Assembly (NCBI GenBank): GCA_038496445.1
Contig: JALMLS010000353.1
Span: forward strand, 377,144-441,143
Source of the DNA: Trichosphaerium sp. ATCC 40318
Lineage: Eukaryota > Protista > Tubulinea
Length of the DNA: 64,000 bases
Direction: 5' to 3'
Below the pieces are notes generated by a model. The model made no database searches and was not told the DNA's origin. It worked only from the letters and a program-made list of their open reading frames with translations. This document shows, piece by piece, positions 2,664-64,000 of this stretch. Position 1 is the stretch's first letter. Each line of letters begins with the position of its first letter. A program made the position numbers and the translations under genes.

Positions 2664-3939
2664 ATGACTGAGCCACAAATCAAACGCCAATATGGCAGCG
2701 ATACGCTATTACAGACTCTACCATCCGAAATATGGCAGCACATCCGTTCTCAATGCCATTGGACTGCTATCGGCTCTATTCACGCTGTATCGTCTACTTG
2801 GCACAAAGAAGCAGCGAAACCAACGTTTGAACAAAAACTATACCGCAACATCATAGAATCAACTCTTAACGAATACACGTTCTTCAAAACAATGAAAATT
2901 AACGTTTCAGAGTGGTTAGATCGTTTTGACAACACCGTACGCTTATTAATCGTTTATTTCGTACTACGAGCGTTGAACTAAGCTCCAACAGGTTACATAC
3001 AAGTGTATCTTCAAGGATCAGTTACTAGAAATAGTATCCGAGTTGGAAAAGCTGAAAAAAATCGTATCCAAGACGGTGCCTTGGAAAGAAAACTATGAGG
3101 GTGCTTTATCAATTGTCGGAAGTTTCTCTGAGAAAAAATTCGCTGACAAGGTACCTGGTAGCTACTCGTTCATCGGTGGTACTCCTACTGTTCCTTCTGA
3201 TGCTGATATATCTGGTTGGAACATCGGTGATGGTAAAACACTCGTTGCACAGCTTGATATGCTTGATTTTTCTCACGTGTTGAGCACTCAAGATCTATTC
3301 CCTAAAAAAGGTATTTTATACTTTTTTCACACTGAGTGGAGTACTCCTTCTGTGTTCCATATTGTACGGCTTTTGTTTCTTCTTGTTGTTTTATATGATT
3401 ATACGTAGTTGAACTACGTAGTAGAGCCATTAATGACTCGGCTTAAGTCGAACTGTATCGAGTCATTAACTGCTTGCACTTATTACACGTGATTTTGTAC
3501 TAATTGTATTTAGGATACGGAGGATTGTGATACATTGAAATGGGCAACAGGATATTCACCTGGGGAAGGACGAATGCTCAAGAGTGTTATATCTTCAGCT
3601 ATTAAAGATACACTTTTTGTCGATAGTTCTAAGCTTGAATCATTGATTAAAGAAGACCTCCCGAAAGACAAGAAATGGGACAGTAGAGAAGCACTTGAAG
3701 AGTTTGAAAAAGATAGAGCAAAGTACACATTTCGTGATGGTTATTTCCCAGGTTGTCATCGGGTTGGAGGATACAAGAGTTTTTGTAGTCAAGGTAATTC
3801 TGTGTTAAGTGAAGGCGAGAGATTGTACATTCAAACATCTCATGATGGTGATTTATGGCACTCTTTTATCTTCAGTACTGATATTTCTAATGTTGGTGAC
3901 TACTCAAAAGTAAATCTGATGATGTCTGACGACGTATAA
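2664..3939 (+). CDS. F-box-like plus DUF1963/YwqG-like domain protein (exons 2664-2936, 2992-3363, 3514-3939)
   Basis: N-terminal LLQTLPSEIWQHI is F-box-like. SFIGGTP, LVAQLD, FPKKGILYFF and HRVGGY..SQ are typical DUF1963 motifs. Both GT-AG introns keep the frame. Confidence 0.75.
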
Positions 3940-6451: not shown

Positions 6452-7937
6452 CTAACATGCTTGCTGCCTTATGAAAAGTCTGTTCAATTTTTTCACACGC
6501 CATAATTTCTGACCATTCCAACCAACCATCTCTACAAATTGCGCAGAATCCCCTATTGAAACTACGCTTATACCATGGCATGAACGAACATCAACTTGGA
6601 CTTTATGAGAGTATCTACTATGGTCAACATTTCCATGCTGAACATAATGAGACCACTTCGTTTTTCCATTGTTTTCAACCATAGATAATTCAACACCACT
6701 ATCGAAATACGGTGAATAGGCATAGGTAAGTATTGTTCCATCTCCAAACAATAGAAATCTAGCAGGAGACTCTACTGAAACGTCTGATTTCCATTGAAGG
6801 CTTAACTTGTTTGCTTCGAGTTTGTAACAGTGCACTTGACAATCTGAACTGATAAACACTTTATCATTTAGGCACTCGAAACTTTTACTAGCAAAAGGAA
6901 GTAGTGCTACTAGCTTACTTGATTTAATATCAAAGATAGTTGTACTGCTCTCAGCCTTTACATTATGTCCATTTATCTGTTTATAAGGTCCTAGTTTGGC
7001 AATAGATAGCAGATTCTCACTAGCAGAAATACTTAATGCACTTGCTTTGGCTACAATTGAAATGATGTTTTTCTTCCATATTGTCTTTCCTTCTATTGAA
7101 TGTTAGTCACTTTCATGTACAGTGGTTCCTTTGTCATACCTTTAGATATATTCAAGCAAAATAACATCCTCTTTTTTGGTATATATGCTGTATCACCATC
7201 AAGGCAAAAGAGAAGATCTCCAGAAAAAGCTATAAGAGGGTTCCTAATACCAATTTTTTTTTTCCATTTTGTATTTCCAGTTTCAATGTCAACACCCAAT
7301 ATATGTTTCTTTGTTGTCAATATAACAATGTCATGGGTAATTAAGTGATTTTGATAGGCTTTCACCATCTTCGGGGTTGCCCACAAGTTGCGACCGCTTT
7401 CTGTTTTGAGCATCAAATACCATATGTCAACATTAGCACGACGTAGTCCAACATGTACTTCACGTGGTTTACGTTGCCAATACGAGAGTTCAGCTTCTCT
7501 AGAAATATTCAATATCTGTCCATTAGTAACATCTAACTTATCCTCGTTCTCTATAAACACAAGAGGCGCCTGTAGAGTAAAGAGATGATTAACATTCAAC
7601 AAACAACTTTTTTTTTCAACTTTCGAGAACGTAAAACCAGGTTTTTCGTCGGTTGACGCACGTGTTGTTTATGCTCAATATAAGAAGCAAAATAAAAAAC
7701 ATCTTGCCACGAAGAGGACGTTAATATGTCGACTGGCCAACGACATTTGGGACCCCAATGAAGTATCGGCCATTTTTGTCGTAAAAGAAACGAAGCCGAC
7801 TTGTAGTTTCGCAAAATACTTGAAATTGTTGTGTTTGTGCTTGATAAGTACAGTATCGATTGAAAACTGTCGCAAGCGCTACAAACCATGTAAAGAGTAT
7901 CAATTGAACATAAGACTTTGTCTGAGAGCTTTGACAT
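6452..7937 (-). CDS. F-box-like N-terminus plus PQQ-type beta-propeller protein (multi-exon)
   Basis: Repeated propeller-blade motifs GVDIETGNTKW, ESGRNLW, NNGKTKW, NGQKLW. The N-terminal helical segment is weakly F-box-like. 3' end approximate. Confidence 0.55.
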
Positions 7938-9597
7938 TGCCTGTAGGTGAAGAAGCTGGCTGTAGTTCCTAAAGCAGTCAAAACTATTCTTCATTCAACA
8001 ACAACTTACTCAGCTGTTGGGTCAATAACGCAACAGTAACACATGGTTTGGTAGAGTCACCTTGTGGGACTACAACACGTTGATATACTGACGGATATTC
8101 AGTACAAGGTGCATATGTAACGGTGTTTATTAGTCTTTCACCAGTAGAGAACTTTGTCAATACAAGATCTTCGTAACAAGTTCAACAACTTCGTCATAGG
8201 ATTGGGTATCGACTAGTCAAGATTTATGTTCGTAAGTGCGATTAAGTAAAAGCTCTCAACTGATAAAGCGTAAGTATTGAATGTGTACATTACAAGACAA
8301 TTTTGAACATTGCCGGCAGAAGAAAAGTAGCTGAGAACTACAATACAAGCTACTAACACATAATGAATTAACACTGTCATCGGCAAACAAAGAGAAGCTG
8401 TCTTCAAGCGAGAATGCGTAGATACAGACCAAGATTAGTGGAACCACTCTGGTAAACCTCTGAACACGCAACCGCGAATAAAATACTTACGAATAGTTCA
8501 CTCGTGGTGAAGTATAGTTGTTTGCCAACAAAGTTGGTCACGTGTTTCCAAAGCAACAAAAGAATAAGATAAAAGCTCAACTAAATTGTAATCGATAAAC
8601 GTCAAAGACAGTCACTCAATCGTTGGTTTTATTTACCTCAGACAACTTATTAGTAAACGCTTGACTTTGGTGTTGAGTATTTTCTTTCTTGCTAGCTATT
8701 TTAAGGCTTATTGACTATGTGCAAAGAATACATGACGCAACTAAAAAAGAAGTTCCTTGTGATGTTGATGTCATATTCCATTCCAGCTTCTCCGTTTTTA
8801 CCCAAGTTCGCTTTCTCATTCAGGTACTTCCTCTGTGATTCTGTGGACTGATGACCGGCGCTTGGCAGCTAAAAGGCGCTACTATTACAACAAATCACGT
8901 TTCATCTCCTTTATCTGCAGGTCATTGCTTTAAAAAAAGACAAGCAATGTAGTTACATATGTTGTAATATCAAAAAAACTGACATTGATGAAGTACCGAT
9001 AAGAAACCCATAATAAAATGAAACAAATATGTGATTCTAAAGATCGAAGAACTGAAGGGAAAAAGTACTCCATGGCGTACTCAACCTTACGTATGCAGCC
9101 CTGAGGCGATCATAGGGTTATGTCGGTGTCGTACTGGTACCTGTACATGTTCGGCCTACTTCGTTATTGTGAAGGGTGTCGTGACAATAAAAGAGTTTGC
9201 CAACAAAATTATTGTGACCTTTGCGCAGAAAAAAACGTTTCGTGACTTCGCAACAAAAATAACACGCGCACATGATTACTATAAGGGATGAAAAATAAGC
9301 GTACTTTATGTACAAATGAAGGATACAGATTTAGGCACGGCACAAAACAAGGACAAATATTTGTAAAAGTTTTTTTTTAAGTTTTCGGTTTTTTATTTTG
9401 GCTTTCTTTACAAATGTACATTTTAATTTTTGTTATTACAAAAGGAGGGATAATAGGGATACTGAAATAAGCGCTACTTGGCTGATGCCAAGGAAAATTT
9501 TTTGTTTAAACATCGTCAAAGAGAAGAAGTCTTTTTTTTTTTGCTGTTTCGACTTTTTTTCTTGTGGCTGCGGTTCGCACTTTTAAAACGTTCTTCT

Positions 9598-20284: not shown

Positions 20285-21376
20285 ATGCTGGACATATCAG
20301 CAGAAAAGCAAGCTATGATAAACACATCAGAAGAAAAACCTTCACCTCCGTGCTGCCGTAGATACTGTGCTTTATTTCTTATTTTGGGTGTTACCTTTGG
20401 AGTTCTAATTTTAATTCTTATTTGTTTTTTGATTGGCGCTGCCGCTTCCTCACAGAAAGACATAGCTTGTCCACAAAAGTATAATTATGATAAATCTACT
20501 TTCCCTTCTGGAGGGGTTGTACATGGACAGATATCGGGAGTAGGAGCTAACGCAACAAGTAACATTTATGTTTTTTCGAGACAAGGACGTGACTTTAAAA
20601 ACACTGAGATTATCAAAGAACCAGTATTGTTCAGAGTGAATACATCCGGAAGTATTCTTGATTCTTTTGGAGAGAACATGTTCGTCGTACCACATATGGT
20701 ATCTGTTCTAGACGGATTTCTATGGGTCACAGACGTTGCTTTGCATCAAGTTTTTAAACTTGACACTTCTGGAAATGTTCTGCTATCTCTAGGAACTGCA
20801 AGAGTGCCTGGATGGGATAAAACGCACTTTAATCAACCCACCTGCGTTACAGCATTATCTGATAAGGTTTATATATCAGACGGATACGGAAATTGCAGGA
20901 TCGCTGTCTTTTCAAAGAACGGAACTTATCTATTTGAATGGGGCACGTGTGGAAGCGAGCACGGTCAATTTCGCACGCCGCACTCTGTGACTATCGCGTG
21001 GGGTAAATTATACGTTGCTGATCGTAATAATTACCGTACACAAGTGTTTGATCTTGATGGCTCTTTCTTACGTGCTTTTGATTCACACACACCTCGTAAT
21101 GCTTTTTACCGGTTTAAGGCTTTGATGTTCGGATCTTGGATGAGATACACAACTGCTGTAATCTATTCTCCTACGGCAGATGCTCTTTTCTCCTTGGAGG
21201 GTGACCAAATTGTAGTTCGAGATCAACAAGCGACGAACTTGGTTTGTGCATTCACATCTCCAAATGGGATGAACTTTCCTCATGATATCGCAGTTAGTGC
21301 AGTCCCACACCTAGCCATATTCGTCGGTCAGGTCGGTACTACAGATGGTCACGTGCAACACTTTGTAAAAAACTAA
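20285..21376 (+). CDS. NHL-repeat peptidyl-alpha-hydroxyglycine alpha-amidating lyase (PAL)-like type II membrane protein, intronless
   Basis: N-terminal TM segment. FVVPH, WVTDVALHQVFK, HFNQPT, ISDGYGN, PHS, VADR and PHDI match PAL/NHLRC3 motifs. Confidence 0.85.
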   Translation: MLDISAEKQAMINTSEEKPSPPCCRRYCALFLILGVTFGVLILILICFLIGAAASSQKDIACPQKYNYDKSTFPSGGVVHGQISGVGANATSNIYVFSRQGRDFKNTEIIKEPVLFRVNTSGSILDSFGENMFVVPHMVSVLDGFLWVTDVALHQVFKLDTSGNVLLSLGTARVPGWDKTHFNQPTCVTALSDKVYISDGYGNCRIAVFSKNGTYLFEWGTCGSEHGQFRTPHSVTIAWGKLYVADRNNYRTQVFDLDGSFLRAFDSHTPRNAFYRFKALMFGSWMRYTTAVIYSPTADALFSLEGDQIVVRDQQATNLVCAFTSPNGMNFPHDIAVSAVPHLAIFVGQVGTTDGHVQHFVKN

Positions 21377-22599: not shown

Positions 22600-23787
22600 T
22601 CAAGGGACATGTCCAATTTTTTTAATACCTTTCTTTTTAAGTTCTTTAATTCCGGCTAGCGTAACTCTTGTTAAAGACAATCCTAATATCTCAAGACTAC
22701 CAGGTAATGATTTTATGCCTTTATCTGTAATATTACAACCACGCAATTGCAACACCTTTACGTCAGATGATATGGCGCTAATCCAATCATCTGTTGCATT
22801 TGTATGAGTTAGATCAATTGAATAAGCACTTGATAAACTCTTCATAAATATCCCTTTTCGTAATGACCTACAAGAGGAGAGGTTGATATCATGTACACCA
22901 ACCAAAGCTGAAACACCTATATCAGTAACTCCAGTATACTCCAAATTTATGGTATGAACACCAGCTAACGCTGCTACACCTTTATCCGTTATGTCCTTGC
23001 AATATGTTAAATCTATCTTATGTACACCTGCTAGCGATACAATTGAATCTGTTACATGTGTATAACTTAAATCTATGGTATGTACACCAGCTAGTGACGA
23101 TACATCTGTTATATTAGTTGAACTTAAATCAATTGTATGTACACCTGCCAAAGAAGGTATACCCAAGTCAGTGATATGTTCATATTTTTTCAAATTTATT
23201 GTATGCACTCCAGATAAGACAGATAGTACGTCATCTGTGGCACTTGAGTTAACTATGCTAATCGTTGGTATTCCAGAGAGAGCCTTCAAACCTATTTCTG
23301 TAATCTCTTCAGCTTTGTACAGACAAATGTAATTGAGGTATGGAGCAAGTTGTGCCAAACATGAATCTGTTATATCTGGACAGCGTTTTAGTTCTAATCG
23401 TTTAACACCAATCAAATGATTTAACCCTTTGTCTGTTATACAATAGTTGAAGCAAAGGCTTATTGATTTAATACCAGAAAGAAGACAAAGATCTTTGTTG
23501 GTAGTGCCCACAAAGCGTTTTGTTGATACTGTAGTATTCTGTAGAAGAGGACTTCCTTCGAGATAAGAAAAACACTTGTGTGATTTTACATATATTGTAC
23601 CATAACCAATGTGAGTGTGGATGATGTCTCTTAGCCGTCTACAGCTTTGGGAAATTGGATATAGGAAGATATAGTCCAAAAATGCAAGTAAATGAGCGAT
23701 AATCTCTGTAGGAATATCTAGAAGCTCGGTATTGCTCTTGGTTGTATTGCATACAGGTGTGTGCCGTGTGCGCTTTGTTCTTCGCAT
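22600..23787 (-). CDS. F-box/leucine-rich-repeat protein, intronless
   Basis: LLDIPTEIIAHLLAFL F-box, then many LAGVHTIDLS..ITD LRRs. Probable start MRRTKR at 23787. Confidence 0.9.
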   Translation of the reverse strand: MRRTKRTRHTPVCNTTKSNTELLDIPTEIIAHLLAFLDYIFLYPISQSCRRLRDIIHTHIGYGTIYVKSHKCFSYLEGSPLLQNTTVSTKRFVGTTNKDLCLLSGIKSISLCFNYCITDKGLNHLIGVKRLELKRCPDITDSCLAQLAPYLNYICLYKAEEITEIGLKALSGIPTISIVNSSATDDVLSVLSGVHTINLKKYEHITDLGIPSLAGVHTIDLSSTNITDVSSLAGVHTIDLSYTHVTDSIVSLAGVHKIDLTYCKDITDKGVAALAGVHTINLEYTGVTDIGVSALVGVHDINLSSCRSLRKGIFMKSLSSAYSIDLTHTNATDDWISAISSDVKVLQLRGCNITDKGIKSLPGSLEILGLSLTRVTLAGIKELKKKGIKKIGHVP

Positions 23788-24102
23788 GGCAGTATTTGTA
23801 GGGTTTTGTTGAATTGCTATATGTTGGGAAGTTAAACAGCACTGAGAACAAAGAGTGCAGATTAATTTATTGACTGTTCTTGATTGATAGATTATTAAAA
23901 ATACCAAAAAACTCAATCAAAAACAAAATCTACCATAAAATTTTGAAACAAGCTTGCTTGGCCACAATTCTTATAGTTCAAATGGTTACATAGTCTCTGT
24001 GTTTGATGGGTCACTACAGGTACAACATTCGGGTAGAACCCACAAAACATAGGTTGGTTTTAAGGAATTTTGTAGACTACTAAGAATTCATGTTCTTTCA
24101 CC

Positions 24103-25781
24103 ATGGCTACCATGCTGAAAGCAAGGCTTGGACCAGACCAAAAGAAAGTAATCGACGTTCCACGTGACTTTGGCGAACGAAGCACCGTTTTAGCAGCGCA
24201 GCTGGAGCAAATCGACAGTGGAGAGTCAATAGATGATTATTTGATTGTTCTCAAGCACGCTGAGGGATTCTGTTGGCTTGTATCACATTACAACAAACCA
24301 ATAAGCTCAGTATGCGATAAATTGTGTATGGTATCTGAAAAAGAGCGCTTAGAGTGTATACAAGTTGTACGAACATTTTTGTTTTTGAGTCACACAGGTG
24401 TACTTAGCTTGACCTTTTTTCGCTGAGAATGTCTTTGTTTCGAAATGTGCTCGACTAAAGTAAAACATAGTCAAATAAACCAAACAAACAATGTACTTTG
24501 TTTATCTGAGAGACTTTACTGGGTTTTTTGTTAACTTTGTTGTTTATCTAGATCTATGACGCTTTAGATTGTTGTGATTACTTGGACTTACAAATGCCTT
24601 TGTTCATGCAAAGTATAACACGTATGCTTCAGCTTGAAGGATGTGACATAAGAAATGATTTTGTTCAATATTGTTGGCCTGTAAACTTTTCATCAGCAAT
24701 TCAAGATGCCTATGAAGGGAGTACGTAACTCTACTAAATGTGTATTCTAATATAGTAAAGAGTGGTTTGGAACACTGAGAAAAAGAATTATCAGCGGTCC
24801 GTTTATACCACCAACCGGCTTTCACGGTAAGTGAGCATACAATAAAATCTCATGGAATTATTTGTATTACCTCTGGTCGCACTTTTGGTAACAAAAAAGT
24901 CACATGTTGGAACTATTCTTTAAACACCAAACAATTCAGAATACTCGGCCTCCTTGATGAGGCTGCAGGTTTTCACATTGCTAAAGAATACTTGACAAAG
25001 TATTTTTTAGAAGGAACTGCAAAGATAGACAGTGTGATTGTTGCTCACTGTTCATCGTTTTGGAGTTTATTGTCAGCAAGTGAACTATCAGATATCGAGG
25101 CTCAAGCAGGAAGTGATAGATGTCTGGGTAAATTTATTGTCGATAATCTTGTATCTTTCCAATATCTCAAGTGTTTTATTGACATTGCACAAAGCAACGA
25201 TAGGGCTCTTGCGTCGAAAATAGAGCATTCAATTCTGTACCATTTAGCTCAATATGAATCTGCACCTAATTTGAACCTTGTTATTGATCTTATGAAGCAT
25301 ATTCCTCCCTCAGAGACTTGGCAAGCAATTAAACGTGATAATTTTGACATAAATGCTGTACCTCCAATACCTTTCTTTTGGAATGCATTAAAGTACAAAA
25401 ATAGATCACAAATTACAGATTTTTGATTAATGTAATTCCCTAGGATAGGCATGCTAAGCAATCAGCTTGATTTTGGTGACTTGAATCATGCTAGGTTTGC
25501 GGACTGTATCACTCGCAAAGTTGGTACTTCTGTGACACTCATGAGAGGACAGCACAATCCAAACAGGCAGAGGTCAAAAGTTTACGTTGCATTGGAACCA
25601 CTAGATTTAATACCAACTGTACTAAGTGGATGGCGATCAAAATGGAAACAAAAAAAACATACATACAATTTGGACTGGTACAGCGCTTTCCTCACATGCA
25701 AAGAACCAGTTCTACCTACGAGCTAATTAATATCATAGGGATTGTGGCTATATACCTTATACTCCTAAAACTGATAATTGA
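24103..25781 (+). CDS. SKP1/BTB-POZ-like domain protein, copy 1 (multi-exon)
   Basis: KVIDVPRDFGERSTVLAAQLEQID ... ALDCCDYLDL resembles a SKP1/BTB fold. Frame intact after splicing, ending TGA 25779-25781. Confidence 0.55.
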
Positions 25782-25936
25782 CAACAGGTCAATTTAGAAC
25801 TATTCACAAGATTCGCAGGAAACCGTAGTAAGAAAATTGTGAGAATAAAAATAACTTTCAGAACAACTTGGGTAACGTTGATCGTAAAGGAAAACAATTA
25901 TCTGTAATAGTGCAATAATCTGGTTGACCTAGTTCT

Positions 25937-27420
25937 ATGGCTACCACACTCAAAGCGAAGGTCGGCGAAAGGTAACGTACCACGTGACTTTGTTGCGCTT
26001 AGCACTGTTCTATCAGCTCATTGGAGCAAATCGACAGTGGGGAGTCAGCAGATGATTATTTGATTGTTCTTAAGTATGTTGATGGATTTAAATGGCTTGT
26101 ATCGCATTACAACACTTCAATAATACACGATAAATTTTCAATTATCCAAAGAAGACCGCATAACACACCTACAAATTGTACATGTTGGTAAATCTCTAGA
26201 TGTCCGCTGCAGCAAAATGTTGTGATTATTTGGATGTCAAGACGACTATTATTCAAAACATCACACGTATGCTACAGCTGGAGGGTTATAGTATTGATAA
26301 AAATTTGGTACATAACTGTTGGCCTGTATCTTTCGATTCTGCAGCCATTCAGGATGCTTATGAAGGAAGTAAGTGAGTGTTTACTGAATTGAATATTGTT
26401 CTAACAAGAAACAGAATGGTTTGGGACGATAGTAATTGTAGATAGGCCAACGCCACCCTCGGGTCACTCAAAACCATACTTGTACCATGGTCACTCAAAA
26501 TCATACTTGTACCACTCGGTGTTTTGCGTTCAAAGCTGAAAACTCGCACACATCAGCGTTGTGTCAGTGAAAGTGATGTGACTGGACTGTTCATGGACGT
26601 GCTGTTGGAAAGAAAAAAGCTTCAGGTGGCATTACCATTTAAATGTAGAAGCTTTTAGAACCTTGTGCCTCATTGATAAAACTGCAGGGTTTATAGTTGC
26701 TAAAGAATATTTAAGAAAATACTTGTCAAAATCCATTCGGAATAATGAGGTTAAGATAGATGAACAAATCATTGCTGCTTGTTCTCCTTGTTGGAGTGAA
26801 TTAACAAGCACAGAGCTTGCAGAAATGGAAAACCAAAGAGATGGCTGCATAGCAATACTTTTAATAACTAATCTTAAATCTTTCTCATATCTCAAGTGTT
26901 TAATTGATACTGCACAAAAAGATGATGAACTGCTTGCTAAGAAAATAGAACACAATATAATTTTCAGTGTTAGCCAATCAAAAAGAAGCTTAGCTGACTT
27001 AAACGAAATTATTGAAGTCGTTGAGCACATACCACCATCAGAAGCTTGGCAAGTAATTTATTGTGATACCTTTAATGTCGATAGGGTACCTACCATACCT
27101 TTTTTCTGGAAAGCTTTAAAGTACGATTCAGCAAGTCACCTGATTAATAACCAACTTGTTAGAGCTGGGATGCTGAACGGTCAACTAGATTTAGATACAG
27201 TACCACACAAAAAGTTTGAAGACTGTATTAGGGGCACGCCATCCAAGGGACATCACAAGAGTAGCAACATTGTCTTGCAACCATTATCATTTGTACCAAC
27301 AGAATTGATTGGCTGGAAAGCCAAATGGTCACAGAAGAGACACAGCTACGAATTTGACTGGTACATTCCTCCCTTTGTTTATTCTAATTATTCAGTAGGG
27401 ATTGTGGTTTAACAACATGA
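25937..27420 (+). pseudogene. Tandem paralog (copy 2) of the SKP1/BTB-like gene, with 5' frameshifts
   Basis: Near-identical DNA blocks shared with copy 1 (ATGGCTACC, CCACGTGACTTTG, GGAGCAAATCGACAGTGG) and shared HIPPSE.WQ.I and IPFFW.ALKY. Early TAA and a 1-nt deletion near 26020. 27-bp tandem duplication at 26462-26515. Confidence 0.6.
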
Positions 27421-56894: not shown

Positions 56895-59162
56895 CTATGT
56901 TTCATAATTAAAATTCAAATCAAGTGCGTAAGCAGCATCATCTTCAATTAGCGACGAATCTGGCTCTGAAGAAGTGTTCGTCCAAGATTTGTTGAGTTGC
57001 TATTTGGGTAGTGAGTATTTTTTGCATGAAATAAAAGGATATTGTGCGTACCACTTTGCTCTGCAAGTTTTGTGCATGAATTTGAAAGTTCTTTGACATT
57101 GGAATCTTATCCGCTTCCATTTCTTCCAATAACTCGAACGCTTCATCGTATCTCTCGTATTTTTCAAATCCTTTGAACAAAGTCAAGTAGCTCGCCGAAT
57201 TGGGGTAAACATCTGGTGTCGCTTTTAATTCTTTGTGAACTTCAATTGCACCATCGACATCTCCGCTAGCTATATAGGTGTGTATCAACACAGTGAATGT
57301 GTAAACGGTAGGAGCAATTTTTAGTTGTAGCATGTCGGTATATGTTGAAAATGCAGCTTGTAGCGAAATCTTTGCCATAGCATTTATCAACGTAGTATAA
57401 TGAACAACAGTTGGGCTATACCCGTCCTTCTTCATATCATTGATGATTTGTTGCGCATTGATGTGATTGCCTAGAAAGCTATGGACCACCAGAAGTTCTA
57501 AGTATGTTACTTCATCGTATTCGATGTTCATATCTTTCATTTTTTGTGCGATTATAAGTGCTTTGTCAAGCGATTTTGTTCCTTCAAGGTGTTTAGTTTC
57601 CTTATATTTCATTCTCAACAGCCGCAATACACAATTATAGACAACTGTGTTCGGGTTTAAGTCTATTTTGACCATGTCATCATAAAAAGCAAGACCGTCA
57701 GTGAACTTGTTCATTTTTGTGCATGCGCTAATAATGATAGAATAAGTAAGGCAATCTGGTGTTTCGCCTCGTGACACCATGACTTTATATATCTCGTGTA
57801 TTCTATCCAATTGTCGAAAGTGAGCGTAAACTGAAATCAATGTATCATAGCCGACTTTGTTGGGGTCCATGCGTTTTTCGCGCATTTCTTCTACTATTTT
57901 TAAAGCTTCTTTTGTTTCACCTTGTAATAACCGGTTAGACAAACGAAGTTTTTTCAAGCAAAAGAAAAAAAAAATAGTGATGGGAGTACCTTGAGCCATG
58001 TGCATCTGTATCATGTATATGCGTGTTTGACTATCAGGCCTAACGACTTTGGATTGTTTAATTTCTTTAACAAGCTTCAGGCCTTTGTGTAAGTCTGCGT
58101 TATTTTTTGAGTATACGTGTAGCAAAGAATTGTAAATGCCAATGCTAGGTTTCAGGCCGTCACTGACCATAGCCTTTAGGTAATACTGAGCGTGATCACT
58201 ATCATTCCGTCCAACAGCAGCGATAAGCGCAGCATATGCGATGACATCGAGCTTGATTTTGTTTTTGCGCATCCTGTCATAAACGGAAATGGCTTTTTTA
58301 CCTAACCCTTTTTTTCCGTACTCAGAGATCATGGTAGTGAGAACAACAAGCGGTGGCCGCGTATAACCGTTATCCATCATTCGTACGATCAAATCTATAT
58401 TATTGACGCCCCCTTCCGCATTGAGTGCAGCACGAAGAAGGTTGACATAAAAAAAGTCATCTACTTCATCTTTGGGTATTGAGTTTATAAGCGTTTCCAC
58501 TTGACTCCTCGTTTTGGCAACATTAGCCAGGAAGGTGTATATTTTAACTGTTGGTTTTTTAAAACGCTGCATTTCTTTGTACGCCAAATCGAAGTCCTTG
58601 ATTTGTGGCATAACCTTAAAAAATATTCTGGCCAATTGCGTGTCATTCGCATTTGGTTTCCGTGTAAGTCTTAGTTCCCGCAACACTGCTTCTGTAACAA
58701 ACCAAGTGTTAGAAACAGTCGTTTGGTGATGTCATTTTGTTGGGAGAAAATAACAAATTAAAAGCCTTGTAACTACGCCAAAACGCGATGAAGCGCCAGC
58801 TACATCATTGTTTTAAACATAATTTTGTTTTTGGGCAAATAGACACCGTTTTGATTTTAGAACCTTTTTTCTCCTCTGAGACTTGCGTGGTTACCGTTGA
58901 GCGCTTTATTGGATGCGTATTGTACTGGTTCTGCACAAAAGTAAGCGAAGCCGTGCGTTTGGCAGTAGAGTACCTTAGAAAAGCTTGGCGTGCGTATTTC
59001 CGAGCGTACTGTGCGTTTGTGATAGCGTCGTGGTTTGTGGTGTCTGTCGTTGCTGCAATACCTACGCACAGTACTACTTTGTGCGTTTACACGCGTTGTA
59101 GCCCCTTGAAACGCTACTGCTGTAGAACAAGCGCGCAATGTCATTGAATGTGCTAAAAACAT
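56895..59162 (-). CDS. Pentatricopeptide-repeat (PPR) protein, probably mitochondrial
   Basis: About 12 repeats of 35 aa (e.g. PTVVHYTTLINAM, PTVYTFTVLIHTY). Arg/Ser-rich N-terminus. Introns at ~57921-57989 (in frame) and 57000-57051. Confidence 0.92.
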
Positions 59163-59352: not shown

Positions 59353-59542
59353 TTAGCCCTAGCCCTAACCCTAATTTACATTAGGTCAACCAACCCTAGC
59401 CCTAAATACAAATTAGGGTTCGTGCCATAACCCTAAATACAAACTAGGGTTCGTGCCCTAACCCTAATTGATATTAGGGCTAAATAATGTACATCTAGGG
59501 TTAGGGACTATGTGGAGTTAGGGTTTAGGGTTAGGGTTTAGG
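59353..59542. repeat. Interstitial telomere-like repeat cluster in inverted arrangement
   Basis: CCCTA(A/G) units on the left and TTAGGG/TTTAGGG units on the right. Duplicated 27-mer CCCTAAATACAAA(T/C)TAGGGTTCGTGCC. Confidence 0.8.
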
Positions 59543-59763
59543 AGTCTGCTACTATTTTTTTTTTCAAACCTTACATTTGCTTGTTAGTAACGTTCCGAGC
59601 TAATTTTGCCACATGCTATTGCATGTAGGTATTTTCGTATGTTACAAGGGACATAAAGATTAGTCCTTGTCATAATTTTGCATTTTTCTCATTATTTTCT
59701 TACTATTGTCTACATACACAATTGTCATCCACAATGTCAATTGCATGTTTGAAATTGTGCATG

Positions 59764-59905
59764 AAACTAAAGTGTTTGTTTGAATTACAAAGACTTTAAG
59801 CAGATTCAGTGAAATAGCCTTGATAAAACTAAAGTGTATGTTTGAATTATAAAAACTTTGAAGAGATTCAATGAAATTGACATAATAAAACTAAAGTGCA
59901 TGTTT
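59764..59905 (+). repeat. 62-bp tandem repeat (~2.3 copies)
   Basis: AAACTAAAGTG recurs at 59764, 59826 and 59888 with similar intervening sequence. Confidence 0.8.
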
Positions 59906-60464
59906 ATTTATTATTTGATAAATAACAATGTATGTACACTTTTTTTTTTTTTTATAATTATTAATCAATTTCAAAGAACGTAGGTGTCCCCTGGTATTGA
60001 CATACATATGCGTGTGTGATTCAATCGCCGTCACGTGATATTGTCTTAGTTTGACTTTATCAAAACACAGGATGAGCAACAACAAAGAAGACTCTCCTAC
60101 ATCTAAGGCTCTGAAAAGCCTATAAATGCTAGGAGAATACCCAAGCAGAAAAAAGGTACCAACTTCCTCCTTTTTTTTTTTAACCCCTTCCATTAGGCTT
60201 TATTAATTAAATAAAGTCTAATGGAAGGGGTTTTTTGATTTTAAAGGGTTTTTTTAAATCCCTAATTTTTCTTTGAATATTTTCGTTGAACCTCGTCGCA
60301 CATGTATACGCATGTCACGATAGGTCGCCATAGCAAAGCATTTGAGGACATATTCTATGTGTATCAATGCTAGCTATGTGCTTTATCGTGTACAGGCATA
60401 TATGTGTTTTTGATGGGTTTATTTTTAATATTAATTATATAACAAGTCAATGTATGTACGCATA

Positions 60465-60860
60465 CGTTCCGAGGTCGGAACGCATGTTTACATACATTGA
60501 CTTTTTTGGATTACGTTCCGAGCTCAGAACACATACGTTGACCTGTTTGGGTACGTCCGAGCTCGGAACGTATGTTCACATACGTTGTCCTGTTTGGGTA
60601 CGTCCCGGAACGTAACGTTTACATACGTTGACCTGTTCGGGGACGTCCCGAGCTCGGAACGTATGTTTACATACGTTGACCTGTTCGAGGGCGTCCGAGC
60701 TCGGAACGTACGTTTACATACGTTGACCTGTTTGGGTACGTCCCGAGCTCGGGTATGTATGTTGTCCTGTTCGGGTACGTCCCGAGCTCGGAACGTACGT
60801 TTACATACGTTGACCTGTTTGGATACGTTCCGAGCGCAGAACGTATGTTTACATACATTG
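60465..60860 (+). repeat. Intronic ~47-bp tandem array (~9 units) built on palindrome CGT(T/C)CCGAGCTCGGAACG
   Basis: Unit CGTCCCGAGCTCGGAACGTATGTTTACATACGTTGACCTGTTTGGGTA, which contains a second inverted repeat AACGTATGT-TT-ACATACGTT. Confidence 0.92.
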
Positions 60861-61317
60861 TTTTATATATTTAGTTGATATTTCTATTTTAACTTGTTTA
60901 TTGTTGACTATGACTAACTTTTACACTAGTTCCAGAGCCCAAAGGTATTGGCTGGTTTATATTGGCAAATATAAATTCACGCTTGAATTGGAAGAAAGCT
61001 ATTGGCACTCTGTTGGGTGAAGGGGATGGTATTGCCATTGGGTTTTTGTATGTTGCTTCTTAGATTCTCATATACTTTTGTTCCTTTCAATGTTTTATTT
61101 ACATGTATTTAGAGAAGCAATTTTACCAGACAAAGATATTACCCAAGTACATGTCAGAAGTATGCCTTTAGAGCAATTGGAAAATATTTTGAGCAATTTT
61201 TTCACTCAGTTTTACAAATACATTGGCTGCAGCATGTGATTTGAATGATCCAGAGCAGCTATCAAATTTGTTCAAGGTATGTATTTTCCCTTTCATAAAC
61301 ACACACTTGTCACGTAG

Positions 61318-61530
61318 GGTCCCAGCCTCGGAACCTATACCTTACACGCGTTTTTATTGTGTGATAGCGGTCCGAGCTCGGGAGCAATGTTAACATGCAT
61401 TTTTCTTTTATGATAGCGTTTCGAGCTAGGAACGAAATCCAAACAGGTCTATGTATGTAAACGCACGTCCCGAGCTCGGAACGTATACTTACACGCGTTT
61501 TCTTGTCCGGTAGCGTTCCGAGCTCGGAAG
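61318..61530 (+). repeat. Second intronic cluster of the CCGAGCTCGG palindrome (5 copies, ~49-bp spacing)
   Basis: Copies near 61318, 61368, 61417, 61466 and 61514 with divergent spacers. Confidence 0.85.
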
Positions 61531-62978
61531 GTTAGCACACATGCCTTTTTAGTTTACTTATTTATCAGAATTGTTGATGCTGACATTGTTTGTTTTTTTT
61601 AGATAAGATTTCCTCACTTTGATACCAAAGACTCTTTGGCAACATTCTTAAACAAAGTGATACATACTTTTAATGAAGCTCCTTCTGAGTGGTGGGAGCC
61701 TATGGCCTATGATGGAGAAATGGACAAACAGACTTGGTATAATACTTGTGTGGAAAGAATATTATATTGGCAGATTGTTATTTGGACAGAGCAATTGTAT
61801 GAGGCCACAGCATTAAATCTGACAGATTCTGAATACTATGCTGCACTGTTGATGGTGTATGCCAGAAACTCACTATCTTTCAGCAAGCTGCCGATTTTGA
61901 TGAATTCATGTCGTACGTCCGAACGAACATGCCGACCGCATGTGTATATTTTCGTTTACTCTTTGATATTGTACTTACTTCTATATTAGTTGCACTAAAG
62001 CACATGAGTCAATGAATCTGTGTTTGATTGATAAAAAGGATCTAGAAGCTTTAAATCATACAGCAGCTAAAGATGGCATGTAGAAGACCTACTACTTCCT
62101 GGGGATGTTGAACCAAAAGCTGATGAAATGTCTCATATTGTGTGTTTTATGGATGTCAGATCAGTAAACACTAGAAATATCTTGGACAAGATGGAACTGA
62201 AAGATACTCATCTCAAACCTTTGATATTGACATATAACCCTGTGATCTATAATGGGGTAAAAACACCTGGGTTTGGTGTTGCTGATGGAGCTCATTGCTT
62301 GTTGACAGCTCTCTGGTACGTCACGATCGAACGCCGTCGCACAGACGTTACGCTTGTACGGCGACGTTCGCGACACATGACCATACACAACAGTTGCCTG
62401 ACATTTTTGTTTTAGCAAACCAAGTCCAACAAATGCCAGGACCAACTCTGTCAGCAATTTTAAATTGGGAAAGCAGTTGACATGGTTTAATCCTTTTAAG
62501 GGTTTAAATGCCATATCAACATATTGCTCCAAGCTGAATGAAGACCAAACCAGAGTCACAAAGCATACATTGGTGGATAAGTGCATAGCTGCCTTGGGGA
62601 CATTCATGACACTTGCTAACCTGAAATATGACTATCATGCAGATCCAAGGTAAAGGACAATAGGATAAACAAACGGAAGTGGAGTGTCACAAGGTCTATT
62701 AAATATAAAACAAAATTAATACGTTTGGTATGTCCATTTATTAGCCCCTGAACATTATTTTTTACTAATGACATAACTAATTGTTTTGATTATTAGACAC
62801 AAGACAGTTTAGAAGGTAAATTTGGTGGCCTGAGTGAAGGCAAAACAACATCATCTGGATTGTTTTTCATGCCTGTGCCTACTATAGTGAGGACACAAAT
62901 GACTTCTGTGGTGGATAAAAAGGTAAGTGTATTTTATTTATTATGCCCTTTTACACACGCATAATGTATGTACGCGAA

Positions 62979-63128
62979 CGCTCCGAGCTCGACCGTCGTT
63001 CGACACGCGTTGCGCATGTTCGCGGACGCTTCCGAGCTCGGACGTCATGACGCATGTTCGCGTACGCTCCGAGCTCGGACCGTCTTTCTACTACATAACA
63101 TGTATTCGCGTACGCTCAAGCTCGGAAC
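62979..63128 (+). repeat. Third intronic cluster of the CCGAGCTCGG palindrome (4 copies)
   Basis: Copies near 62979, 63027, 63065 and 63113. Confidence 0.85.
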
Positions 63129-64000
63129 ATCATTTTATGCATTGCATTTGAAAATCTGTTTTATAAAAGTGGGTTTTTAGTTCCTTGTTTGTCAAAAAAA
63201 GCTGTTGCTCATGGTTTTTGTAGCAAAGTAAGACCATACCAGGATATACTATCAGGCATTTTAGTCATGGTGCTTGGAATGACCTACTGGCTGCAAGAAT
63301 ATCAGTATCACATGGTAAAGTTACACCAACTCTTATTTTTTTGAATAGTTTTGCAAAGCAATAACACATGGTTTATACCCTAGAACATTACAAAACTATT
63401 TTTTTGTCAGGTATAAACTTTGCAAAAAGTTTACAGCACAAGCTTTAAGAGCTGAAAAACCTTGGGTGGACCCACATGATAGATGATGAAACCCCTGTTG
63501 ATATTGAAGATGAGTGGTCTTTGTCTGAATATGCAGCAGAGTTGTCTGATGGCATATTAAAGCAGTTGGTATATGATCCAAGAGCTATTGTTCACACAAA
63601 GAAGACTAGTGATGCAGTGTACTATGATTTTAATATCAAGGGCTCCTTGGACAAATTGCAGTTTTCACACACTGCAATGGAGGCCTATGATATGTGCAGA
63701 CTCTAACTTGGTTAAAGCTAACAGTAAGTGATGGTTTTTATTTCATTCGACTAAGTAGCGCCGTTCGCGCACACACGATCGTTTGTAATGACTCGTTTCG
63801 ACAGGGATGCATTGAGCAAAAAATGATTGAAAGTTATAGCCATTTCAAAGAGGTTAAAAGTGGCAACACTAAAAATGCCAGAAGCCACAAAAACAAAAAA
63901 AACAGGAGAAACAGATGTAGAAGATTTAACCAAAGCAAAGCCAACAACAAAATCTCCAAGAAGAAGGAAAAGCAAAAGAAGTAACATTAATATTGCTACA

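Follow-up and report, generated by a model that had tools for sequence, protein, structure and literature searches.

A broken multi-exon gene lies at the right-hand end of a 64,000-nucleotide stretch of DNA from Trichosphaerium sp. ATCC 40318 (contig JALMLS010000353.1, positions 377,144 to 441,143; the whole of this stretch is referred to below as the window, and all coordinates are given within it), where it runs on the forward strand from position 60072 to beyond the window edge at 64000. Its exons are almost free of CpG, and three of its introns carry tandem arrays of a palindrome, CCGAGCTCGG, whose sequence has been conserved from one intron to another. The interpretation favoured here, which is drawn by analogy with the VANDAL elements of plants and their VANC proteins, is that the locus is a decayed mobile-element gene whose introns carry putative binding-site arrays for a dimeric protein that countered CpG silencing. 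This interpretation is put forward tentatively, as one that falls a little short of an even chance; it concerns one decayed copy for which no relatives were found, and the claim is offered as a lead.

The gene comprises 10 exons separated by 9 GT-AG introns. Reading through it requires 9-10 breaks over 1986 nt, which frame bookkeeping resolves into about 6-7 frameshifts and 1-3 stops. The corresponding number in dinucleotide shuffles averages 24 and has a minimum of 16 (n = 200), and on the reverse strand it is 18. Since the observed count is far below that of the shuffles, the locus is, judged from its reading frames, a real though now broken gene, 660 codons long or more, unless some of the frameshifts at homopolymers are assembly errors. 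The neighbouring genes are intact, whereas the array-bearing gene is broken 9-10 times.

The exons and introns of this gene differ sharply in their CpG content. In the exons, 2 CpGs are found against 71.6 expected (observed/expected ratio, o/e, 0.03; Poisson P about 1e-28), TpG and CpA are in excess (o/e 1.57 and 1.41), and the Arg codons are nearly all AGA or AGG, a tally in which exon 6 was read in the wrong frame but to which that exon cannot add any CGN codon, because it contains no CpG. The introns hold 132 CpGs against 78.3 expected (o/e 1.69), and 37 against 28.5 when the arrays are removed. The loss of CpG from the exons with an accompanying excess of TpG and CpA is clearly, as far as base composition can tell, the signature of deamination of 5-methylcytosine (5mC) in CpG; decay at CpA of the kind produced by repeat-induced point mutation was rejected on a TpA o/e of 0.67. 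No such contrast is present in the host gene for HMG-CoA synthase (exons 54 CpGs against 67 expected, o/e 0.81; introns 29 against 25, o/e 1.16). Some other, lineage-specific host genes are partly CpG-depleted, with o/e of 0.3-0.6, and for this reason the host probably has CpG methylation. Within the arrays, the CpGs of the palindromic core are retained in 25 of 26 cases, compared with 7 of 13 at one CpG of the spacer, where CpA is found in the other 6; the Fisher P of 0.003 for this comparison overstates the case, since the array copies have a common ancestry and are not independent. It is this CpG signature alone, an indirect one, that would bear on an anti-silencing role of motif binding. 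CpG-poor open reading frames together with a CpG-rich regulatory part are also the pattern of LINE-1-type elements, which the locus resembles in coding DNA stripped of CpG, in Arg codons that are nearly all AGA or AGG, and in the retention of CpG by what would be regulatory DNA, and from which it differs in that its CpG-rich parts consist of several introns, in the splicing of the gene and in the absence of a reverse transcriptase.

A fuzzy search of the window for the 10-bp core CCGAGCTCGG, which carries two CpGs, located 17 copies, all inside 60468-63126 and distributed over introns 1, 3 and 7 (8, 5 and 4 copies respectively); apart from one chance-like match at 3037, the core is absent from the other 59 kb of intron-rich host DNA. 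The longer 16-mer GTTCCGAGCTCGGAAC has 13 matches at three or fewer mismatches, compared with 0.11 expected. Array 1 (60441-60862, intron 1) consists of 8 palindromes and one core-deleted unit, near 60603, with a period of ~48 bp; it begins with a 66-bp fold-back (60441-60506) that forms a near-perfect hairpin (z -9), and the ends of the array repeat each other in inverted orientation. Array 2 (61321-61530, intron 3) consists of 5 palindromes at 48-50 bp, with the spacer at 61432-61468 inverted, and array 3 (62982-63126, intron 7) of 4 palindromes at 49, 37 and 47 bp, with a left flank that is an inverted half-unit like that of array 1. Spacings of 47-50 bp make up 10 of the 14 within arrays, the remaining four being 39, 39, 37 and 91 bp. 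The first-pass annotation of this stretch, which was made from the sequence alone, had reported about 18 palindromes in three introns at a spacing of about 47-49 bp; the arrays in the three introns are confirmed, with 17 copies at spacings that are mostly 47-50 bp.

The arrays are related to one another beyond the core. A spacer of intron 3 is an inverted copy of a spacer of intron 1 (90% identity over 49 nt), inversion is also seen in the left flank of array 1 and in that of array 3, and by this comparison of sequences all three arrays stem from one ~48-bp unit. The 10-bp core is shared between arrays at an identity of 0.91, whereas the five arm positions that flank it and the spacer both stand at 0.52, compared with 0.27 for shuffled spacers; on these alignments the spacers are homologous between introns and have diverged faster than the core. 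The earlier observation that the palindrome is kept while the spacers differ is thus upheld for the core, with the amendment that the spacers are not unrelated. The consensus proposed with it, in which the palindrome extends outward into the arms GTTCC and GGAAC, is equalled by no copy, the best of them having 1 mismatch; the arm GGAAC is in register in 13 of 34 half-sites, and both arms are present only in the copy at 60468.

A known system with a comparable layout exists in Arabidopsis, in the form of the Mutator-like VANDAL elements and their VANC anti-silencing proteins (PMC5735166, PMC10398659). VANC21 binds short, tandemly repeated motifs in the non-coding sequence of VANDAL21, introns included, and causes methylation to be lost (PMC5735166); in protists, 5mC marks transposable elements and silent genes (PMC12344493). 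The present locus shares with VANDAL/VANC a short motif arranged as tandem repeats in introns and non-coding parts, including the introns of the element's own gene, the gain and loss of repeat units, and a host that appears to methylate CpG. The differences are that the host is a protist and that a Pfam search of the tested exons gave no VANC or MuDR homology, so the locus is best described as VANDAL/VANC-like in layout and is not classed as a member.

Under this interpretation, what is seen would be the left-hand portion of a mobile element that has decayed, located in a CpG-methylating protist a short distance upstream of a host PPR gene that is intact. The element lineage would have been methylated by the host over long periods, which would have erased the CpGs of the exons. 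The core would be a putative binding site that selection maintained for as long as the element was active, and its ligand a dimeric, sequence-specific protein. Slippage or unequal exchange would have increased the number of cores in non-coding DNA, and now and then a segment would have been inverted at the symmetric core. Binding may have marked the element as self and either locally countered CpG silencing or controlled the element's own expression, as is the case for VANC at the intronic tandem motifs of VANDAL; the binder could be the product of this gene or that of another gene of the element beyond 64000. In the literature searched, sequence-specific counter-silencing by a transposon via cis motif arrays in its own introns is documented only for plant VANDAL/VANC, and in the same literature, coverage of which was incomplete, no report was found of such a CpG pattern in a protist. 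If the interpretation is correct, then the similar layout found here, which combines a roughly 60-fold contrast in CpG between exons and introns with a selectively kept palindrome, would be a case of convergence, and the combination of CpG-free exons with CpG-rich, motif-bearing introns would be a signature by which such elements could be found in unannotated genomes.

Several considerations weigh against this interpretation. The motifs bound by VANC are 9 bp long, non-palindromic and co-oriented, whereas the core here is palindromic, has a length of 10 bp and contains two CpGs. The gene showed no recognisable DNA-binding domain, and no transposase, recombinase, target-site duplication or second terminus was seen in the window, which ends before the right end of the putative element. 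Some of the frameshifts, near 60115, 62065 and 63195, adjoin homopolymer runs and could be assembly errors. Continued loss of exon CpG after the death of the gene has to be allowed for, with a P that ranges from 0.002 to 0.3 according to the divergence assumed, and young tandem repeats would be CpG-rich even if they were unprotected. Finally, no homologue or second copy was found in any search, either of the window or of the databases. Exon 4 and exon 9 pieces had no match in a set of 5.8 billion sequences, back-translated scans of metagenome, genome and viral contigs gave no match, phage tblastn gave only matches with E about 5, and sequence searches of the PDB were negative; the apparent matches of an exon 5 piece among 1.84 billion representatives (a fish NLR and a PPR protein), like its matches to PPR structures in the PDB, were rejected as artefacts of summed repeats. 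Among 128 metagenome and viral loci with paired palindromes (GC 45-75%), none is similar to this locus by blastn or tblastn, and single palindrome matches in viral contigs were judged to be due to chance.

The alternative that survives best, which is unlikely but deserves to be taken seriously, is that the arrays are neutral minisatellites. In this account the introns belonged to a methylated host gene or pseudogene specific to the lineage, three of them were invaded by a fold-back mini-element of 66 bp, and tandem expansion followed, the arrays being CpG-rich only because they are young and the core having been homogenised by template switching or conversion at the palindrome. The architecture of array 1, with its hairpin opening and inverted ends, and the reappearance of its inverted half-unit at the start of array 3 are what such a history would produce, another hairpin resembling a miniature inverted-repeat transposable element (MITE) lies nearby in intron 1, and other host genes are partly CpG-depleted as well. 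The locus accordingly resembles fold-back elements and palindromic minisatellites in its 66-bp hairpin seed, its inverted array ends and its tandem expansion in introns. It differs from them in being confined to one gene and in having no identified target-site duplications, and in particular in its pattern of conservation: the ends of a MITE are expected to be conserved more than its interior, which is the reverse of what is observed, since the centre has been kept across introns above its flanks and the spacers have drifted to 52%. This pattern and the absence of copies from the other 59 kb of the window speak against a MITE. It also has to be set against the neutral account that the introns retain CpG even outside the arrays, and that no insertions are found in exons although these make up half of the gene.

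The additional hairpin in intron 1 (60182-60232) is 51 nt long, near-perfect (z -11) and unrelated to the arrays. Its left end reads TTAA followed by CCCCTT, like a piggyBac-type end, and from its form it is possibly a tiny MITE with no connection to them. An origin of the introns themselves as introners was excluded, the only termini they share being the host GTAYGT donor.

A second and improbable alternative is host regulation, in which the gene was a host gene with gene-body methylation targeted to its exons, and the palindromes serve either as recognition sites of a host factor acting on transcription or chromatin, or as RNA structures with an effect on splicing. Elsewhere in the window, CpG-rich 5' ends and depleted bodies are found in an F-box/PQQ gene (6.4-8.0 kb) and in two paralogues (24-27 kb), and arrays 1 and 2, being partly inverted with respect to each other, could pair in the pre-mRNA. 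Against this, no host gene examined comes near an o/e of 0.03 over all exons, the lowest value for a whole exon being 0.33. The motif is furthermore absent from every host intron in the window, the gene is broken and without a homologue, and no Rfam match at or near the gathering score was obtained, on which ground a structured RNA family was excluded.

It is less probable still that the cores are sites of recombination, nicking or replication (iterons), used for example by a tyrosine recombinase or rolling-circle initiator encoded further to the right, and have no anti-silencing function. Recombination at symmetric sites would account for the occurrence of spacers in both orientations between symmetric cores, as seen at 61432-61468 and on the left side of arrays 1 and 3, and the period stays near 48 bp in all three arrays, but template switching at a palindrome also yields inversion, a coding gene with such sites in three of its introns would be expected to be unstable, and no recombinase or Rep was seen in the window.

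The last set of alternatives concerns the ParB fold, and originates in the proposal of the first-pass annotation that the locus is a ParB/parS-like module with parS-like arms in its palindromes. Its identification of D-G-A-H-C at the end of exon 5 (62284-62298) is confirmed, the Cys codon being TGC. ParB-fold proteins are often found on mobile elements, and the main eukaryotic representative of the fold is sulfiredoxin, Srx (PMC12704722). The features shared with ParB are the DG-x-H motif, which follows a hydrophobic strand and has a P-hydrophobic strand upstream of it, and the clustering of palindromes near the gene. The P-hydrophobic...DG-x-H pattern occurs once in the 74,851 aa of the six-frame translation of the window, and the segment of exon 5 that contains DGAHC, GVADGAHCLLTAL, is a candidate for a ParB-like Box II. 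Using a broad ParB profile (21 sequences, including divergent phage proteins), the DGAH segment aligns in register with Box II, with a weak score of 14.6 (probability 1.6%) that is exceeded by 2 of 177 null segments from the window; half-domains of divergent phage ParB-like proteins, used as positive controls and scored against the canonical profile, reach 20-41. The motif region was chosen after the fact.

Against the canonical ParB profile (48 sequences) both exon 5 and exon 6 score at background level, exon 6 is without a signal against the broad profile too, and no profile signal was obtained for Box I or Box III. Exon 6, which follows exon 5 in frame, is modelled as helix-Asn-loop-helix with the Asn near the end of helix 1, an arrangement that fits ParB Box III and is not diagnostic of it (pLDDT 62); by eye, an NTR precedes the P-strand in the manner of Box I, with a spacing from Box I to the strand that is about 9 residues short, and LNED at the helix end recalls Box III. 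Exons were searched one by one, so that the putative domain was cut in two at the junction of exons 5 and 6 and sensitivity was reduced; searched in this way, the exon pieces had no meaningful match in Pfam, PHROGs, NCBIfam, PADLOC or the PDB, and Foldseek returned nothing at E<=0.001 for the single-sequence models of the pieces, which are poor (pLDDT 41 and 62). No helix-turn-helix (HTH) was matched in the tested exon pieces, which are short and decayed, and no ParA ATPase was recognised among the open reading frames of the window. In DGAHC, Cys stands at the position of the catalytic Arg of the Box II GxxR; given the deamination recorded in the exons (o/e 0.03), a change from CGC to TGC at the position after the His is plausible. 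Descent of the gene product from a ParB/Srx-fold protein is a matter of judgement, not of computation, and is regarded as possible, with doubt on balance prevailing.

The proposed likeness of the palindrome to parS is not supported by these comparisons, because the part of the palindrome that is conserved is the part that is unlike parS. When aligned on their centres, the core and parS match at 3 of 8 positions, and the 5-bp match of the arms requires a 1-bp shift of register in each half, a run of this kind being found in 3.4% of random half-sites. The arms are 52% identical between arrays, which equals the spacers, and their register varies, whereas among genuine parS-like sites located close to perfect ones on bacterial genomes, half-site positions 2-8 are conserved at 88-99%. 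The location of the sites in spliceosomal introns is a further difference. With the parS comparison negative and the Arg absent from this copy, the locus, on its sequence, is not a ParABS system, and loading of a ParB clamp onto parS-like sites, for partitioning or for spreading over the element, is highly improbable. What is retained of the original proposal is a decayed gene with cis arrays of a conserved palindrome, probably belonging to a mobile element, and what is lost is parS. A combination of the two ideas, in which a eukaryotic mobile element recruited a ParB/Srx-fold protein that recognised CpG palindromes in the element's own introns and shielded or reactivated it against CpG methylation, a VANC-like system that arose separately in a protist out of a bacterial clamp fold, is also improbable, on a par with host regulation or slightly below it. 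If the protein does have a ParB fold, this would add a DNA-related role for the fold in eukaryotes; the incompletely covered literature yielded no account of a eukaryotic mobile element with introns that contains a ParB-like domain.

The sequence between the apparent start of the intact PPR gene (minus strand, near 59150) and exon 1 contains structures that look like the left terminus of the element: a telomere-like inverted block, an isolated half-copy of the palindrome (half-site at 59591; 59587-59601) and an AT-rich tandem repeat on the forward strand (59764-59905, 2.3 copies of a 62-bp unit). The telomere-like block (59357-59542), ~200 bp upstream of the PPR start, has CCCTAA units on its left and TTAGGG or TTTAGGG on its right and forms an 86-nt inverted repeat (hairpin z -5.5); it contains 12 hexamers in 210 bp, compared with 15 in the other 59.3 kb. 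It is composed of CCCTAA-N7-TTAGGG hairpin units in diverging orientation, and as far as its sequence goes it could be the end of the element or a promoter element of the telo-box-like kind that separates two divergent genes. A telomere fusion was excluded, since the block reads CCCTAA and then TTAGGG, the opposite of what a fusion gives.

The exons of the broken gene, all on the forward strand, are as follows. Exon 1 (60072-60155) is the first ATG-bearing exon, a further exon upstream being possible, and has one frameshift and 0 CpGs against 3.2 expected. Exon 2 (60930-61028) has 1 CpG against 4.0, and exon 3 (61113-61276), with 0 against 4.8, contains either one frameshift or two stops, according to which donor is taken for exon 2. 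Exon 4 (61603-61912; CpG 1 against 11.1) has one frameshift near its 3' end. Exon 5 (61990-62315; CpG 0 against 11.5) has a frameshift near 62070 and encodes KPLILT at 62217-62234, ahead of the candidate Box II. Intron 5 (62316-62415), a phase 2 intron that joins exons 5 and 6 in frame, is CpG-rich (13 against 6.4) and carries no palindrome array. Exon 6 (62416-62649) is predicted to form a helix-loop-helix with helices at residues 26-42 and 49-74. It is followed by exon 7 (62797-62922), by exon 8 (63181-63314) with one frameshift, by exon 9 (63411-63723; CpG 0 against 11.6) with an in-frame stop at 63446 and a break near its 3' end, and by exon 10 (63805-64000), which encodes a Lys-rich low-complexity sequence and reaches the window edge.

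A 22-nt segment upstream of the gene (59918-59939) is 86% like the end of array 1 and lacks the core. Five short CpG-rich modules (59980-60045, 60280-60345, 61913-61960, 62316-62385 and 63745-63804) have the 6-mers CGCCGT, CGAACG and CACGAT in common, each in three of the five, and from these shared words they are possibly a second or older motif family. An unrelated family of 42-bp tandem repeats built on the CCGAGCTCGG palindrome occurs in GC-rich metagenome contigs (L090, L128, L131, L137, L143, L149, L153, L161 and L164), and its likeness to the present locus is limited to the core.

The window as a whole is eukaryotic DNA rich in introns, with a GC content of ~38%, and contains ordinary intact host genes that include HMG-CoA synthase, SNF2 helicase, RING, F-box/LRR and PPR genes. 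In a host gene with a PQQ-type propeller on the minus strand (6452-7994) the 5' part is rich in CpG, and a stretch of 495 nt (6877-7372) contains 1 CpG against 13 expected, a pattern that is like a signature of gene-body methylation. Two apparent tandem paralogues at 24103-27412, without a Pfam match, are normal in CpG in their first exons and depleted in the later ones (o/e 0.3-0.5). The F-box/LRR gene on the minus strand at 22600-23916 has internal 57-bp repeats and a CpG o/e of 0.56; it is presumably of a type that has undergone expansion in amoebae and in the giant viruses associated with them. The best database matches of an intronless host gene in the window are at 36-49% identity, and an intronless NHL gene at 20285-21376 resembles peptidyl-alpha-hydroxyglycine lyase, its best named matches being bacterial and its animal matches scoring lower.

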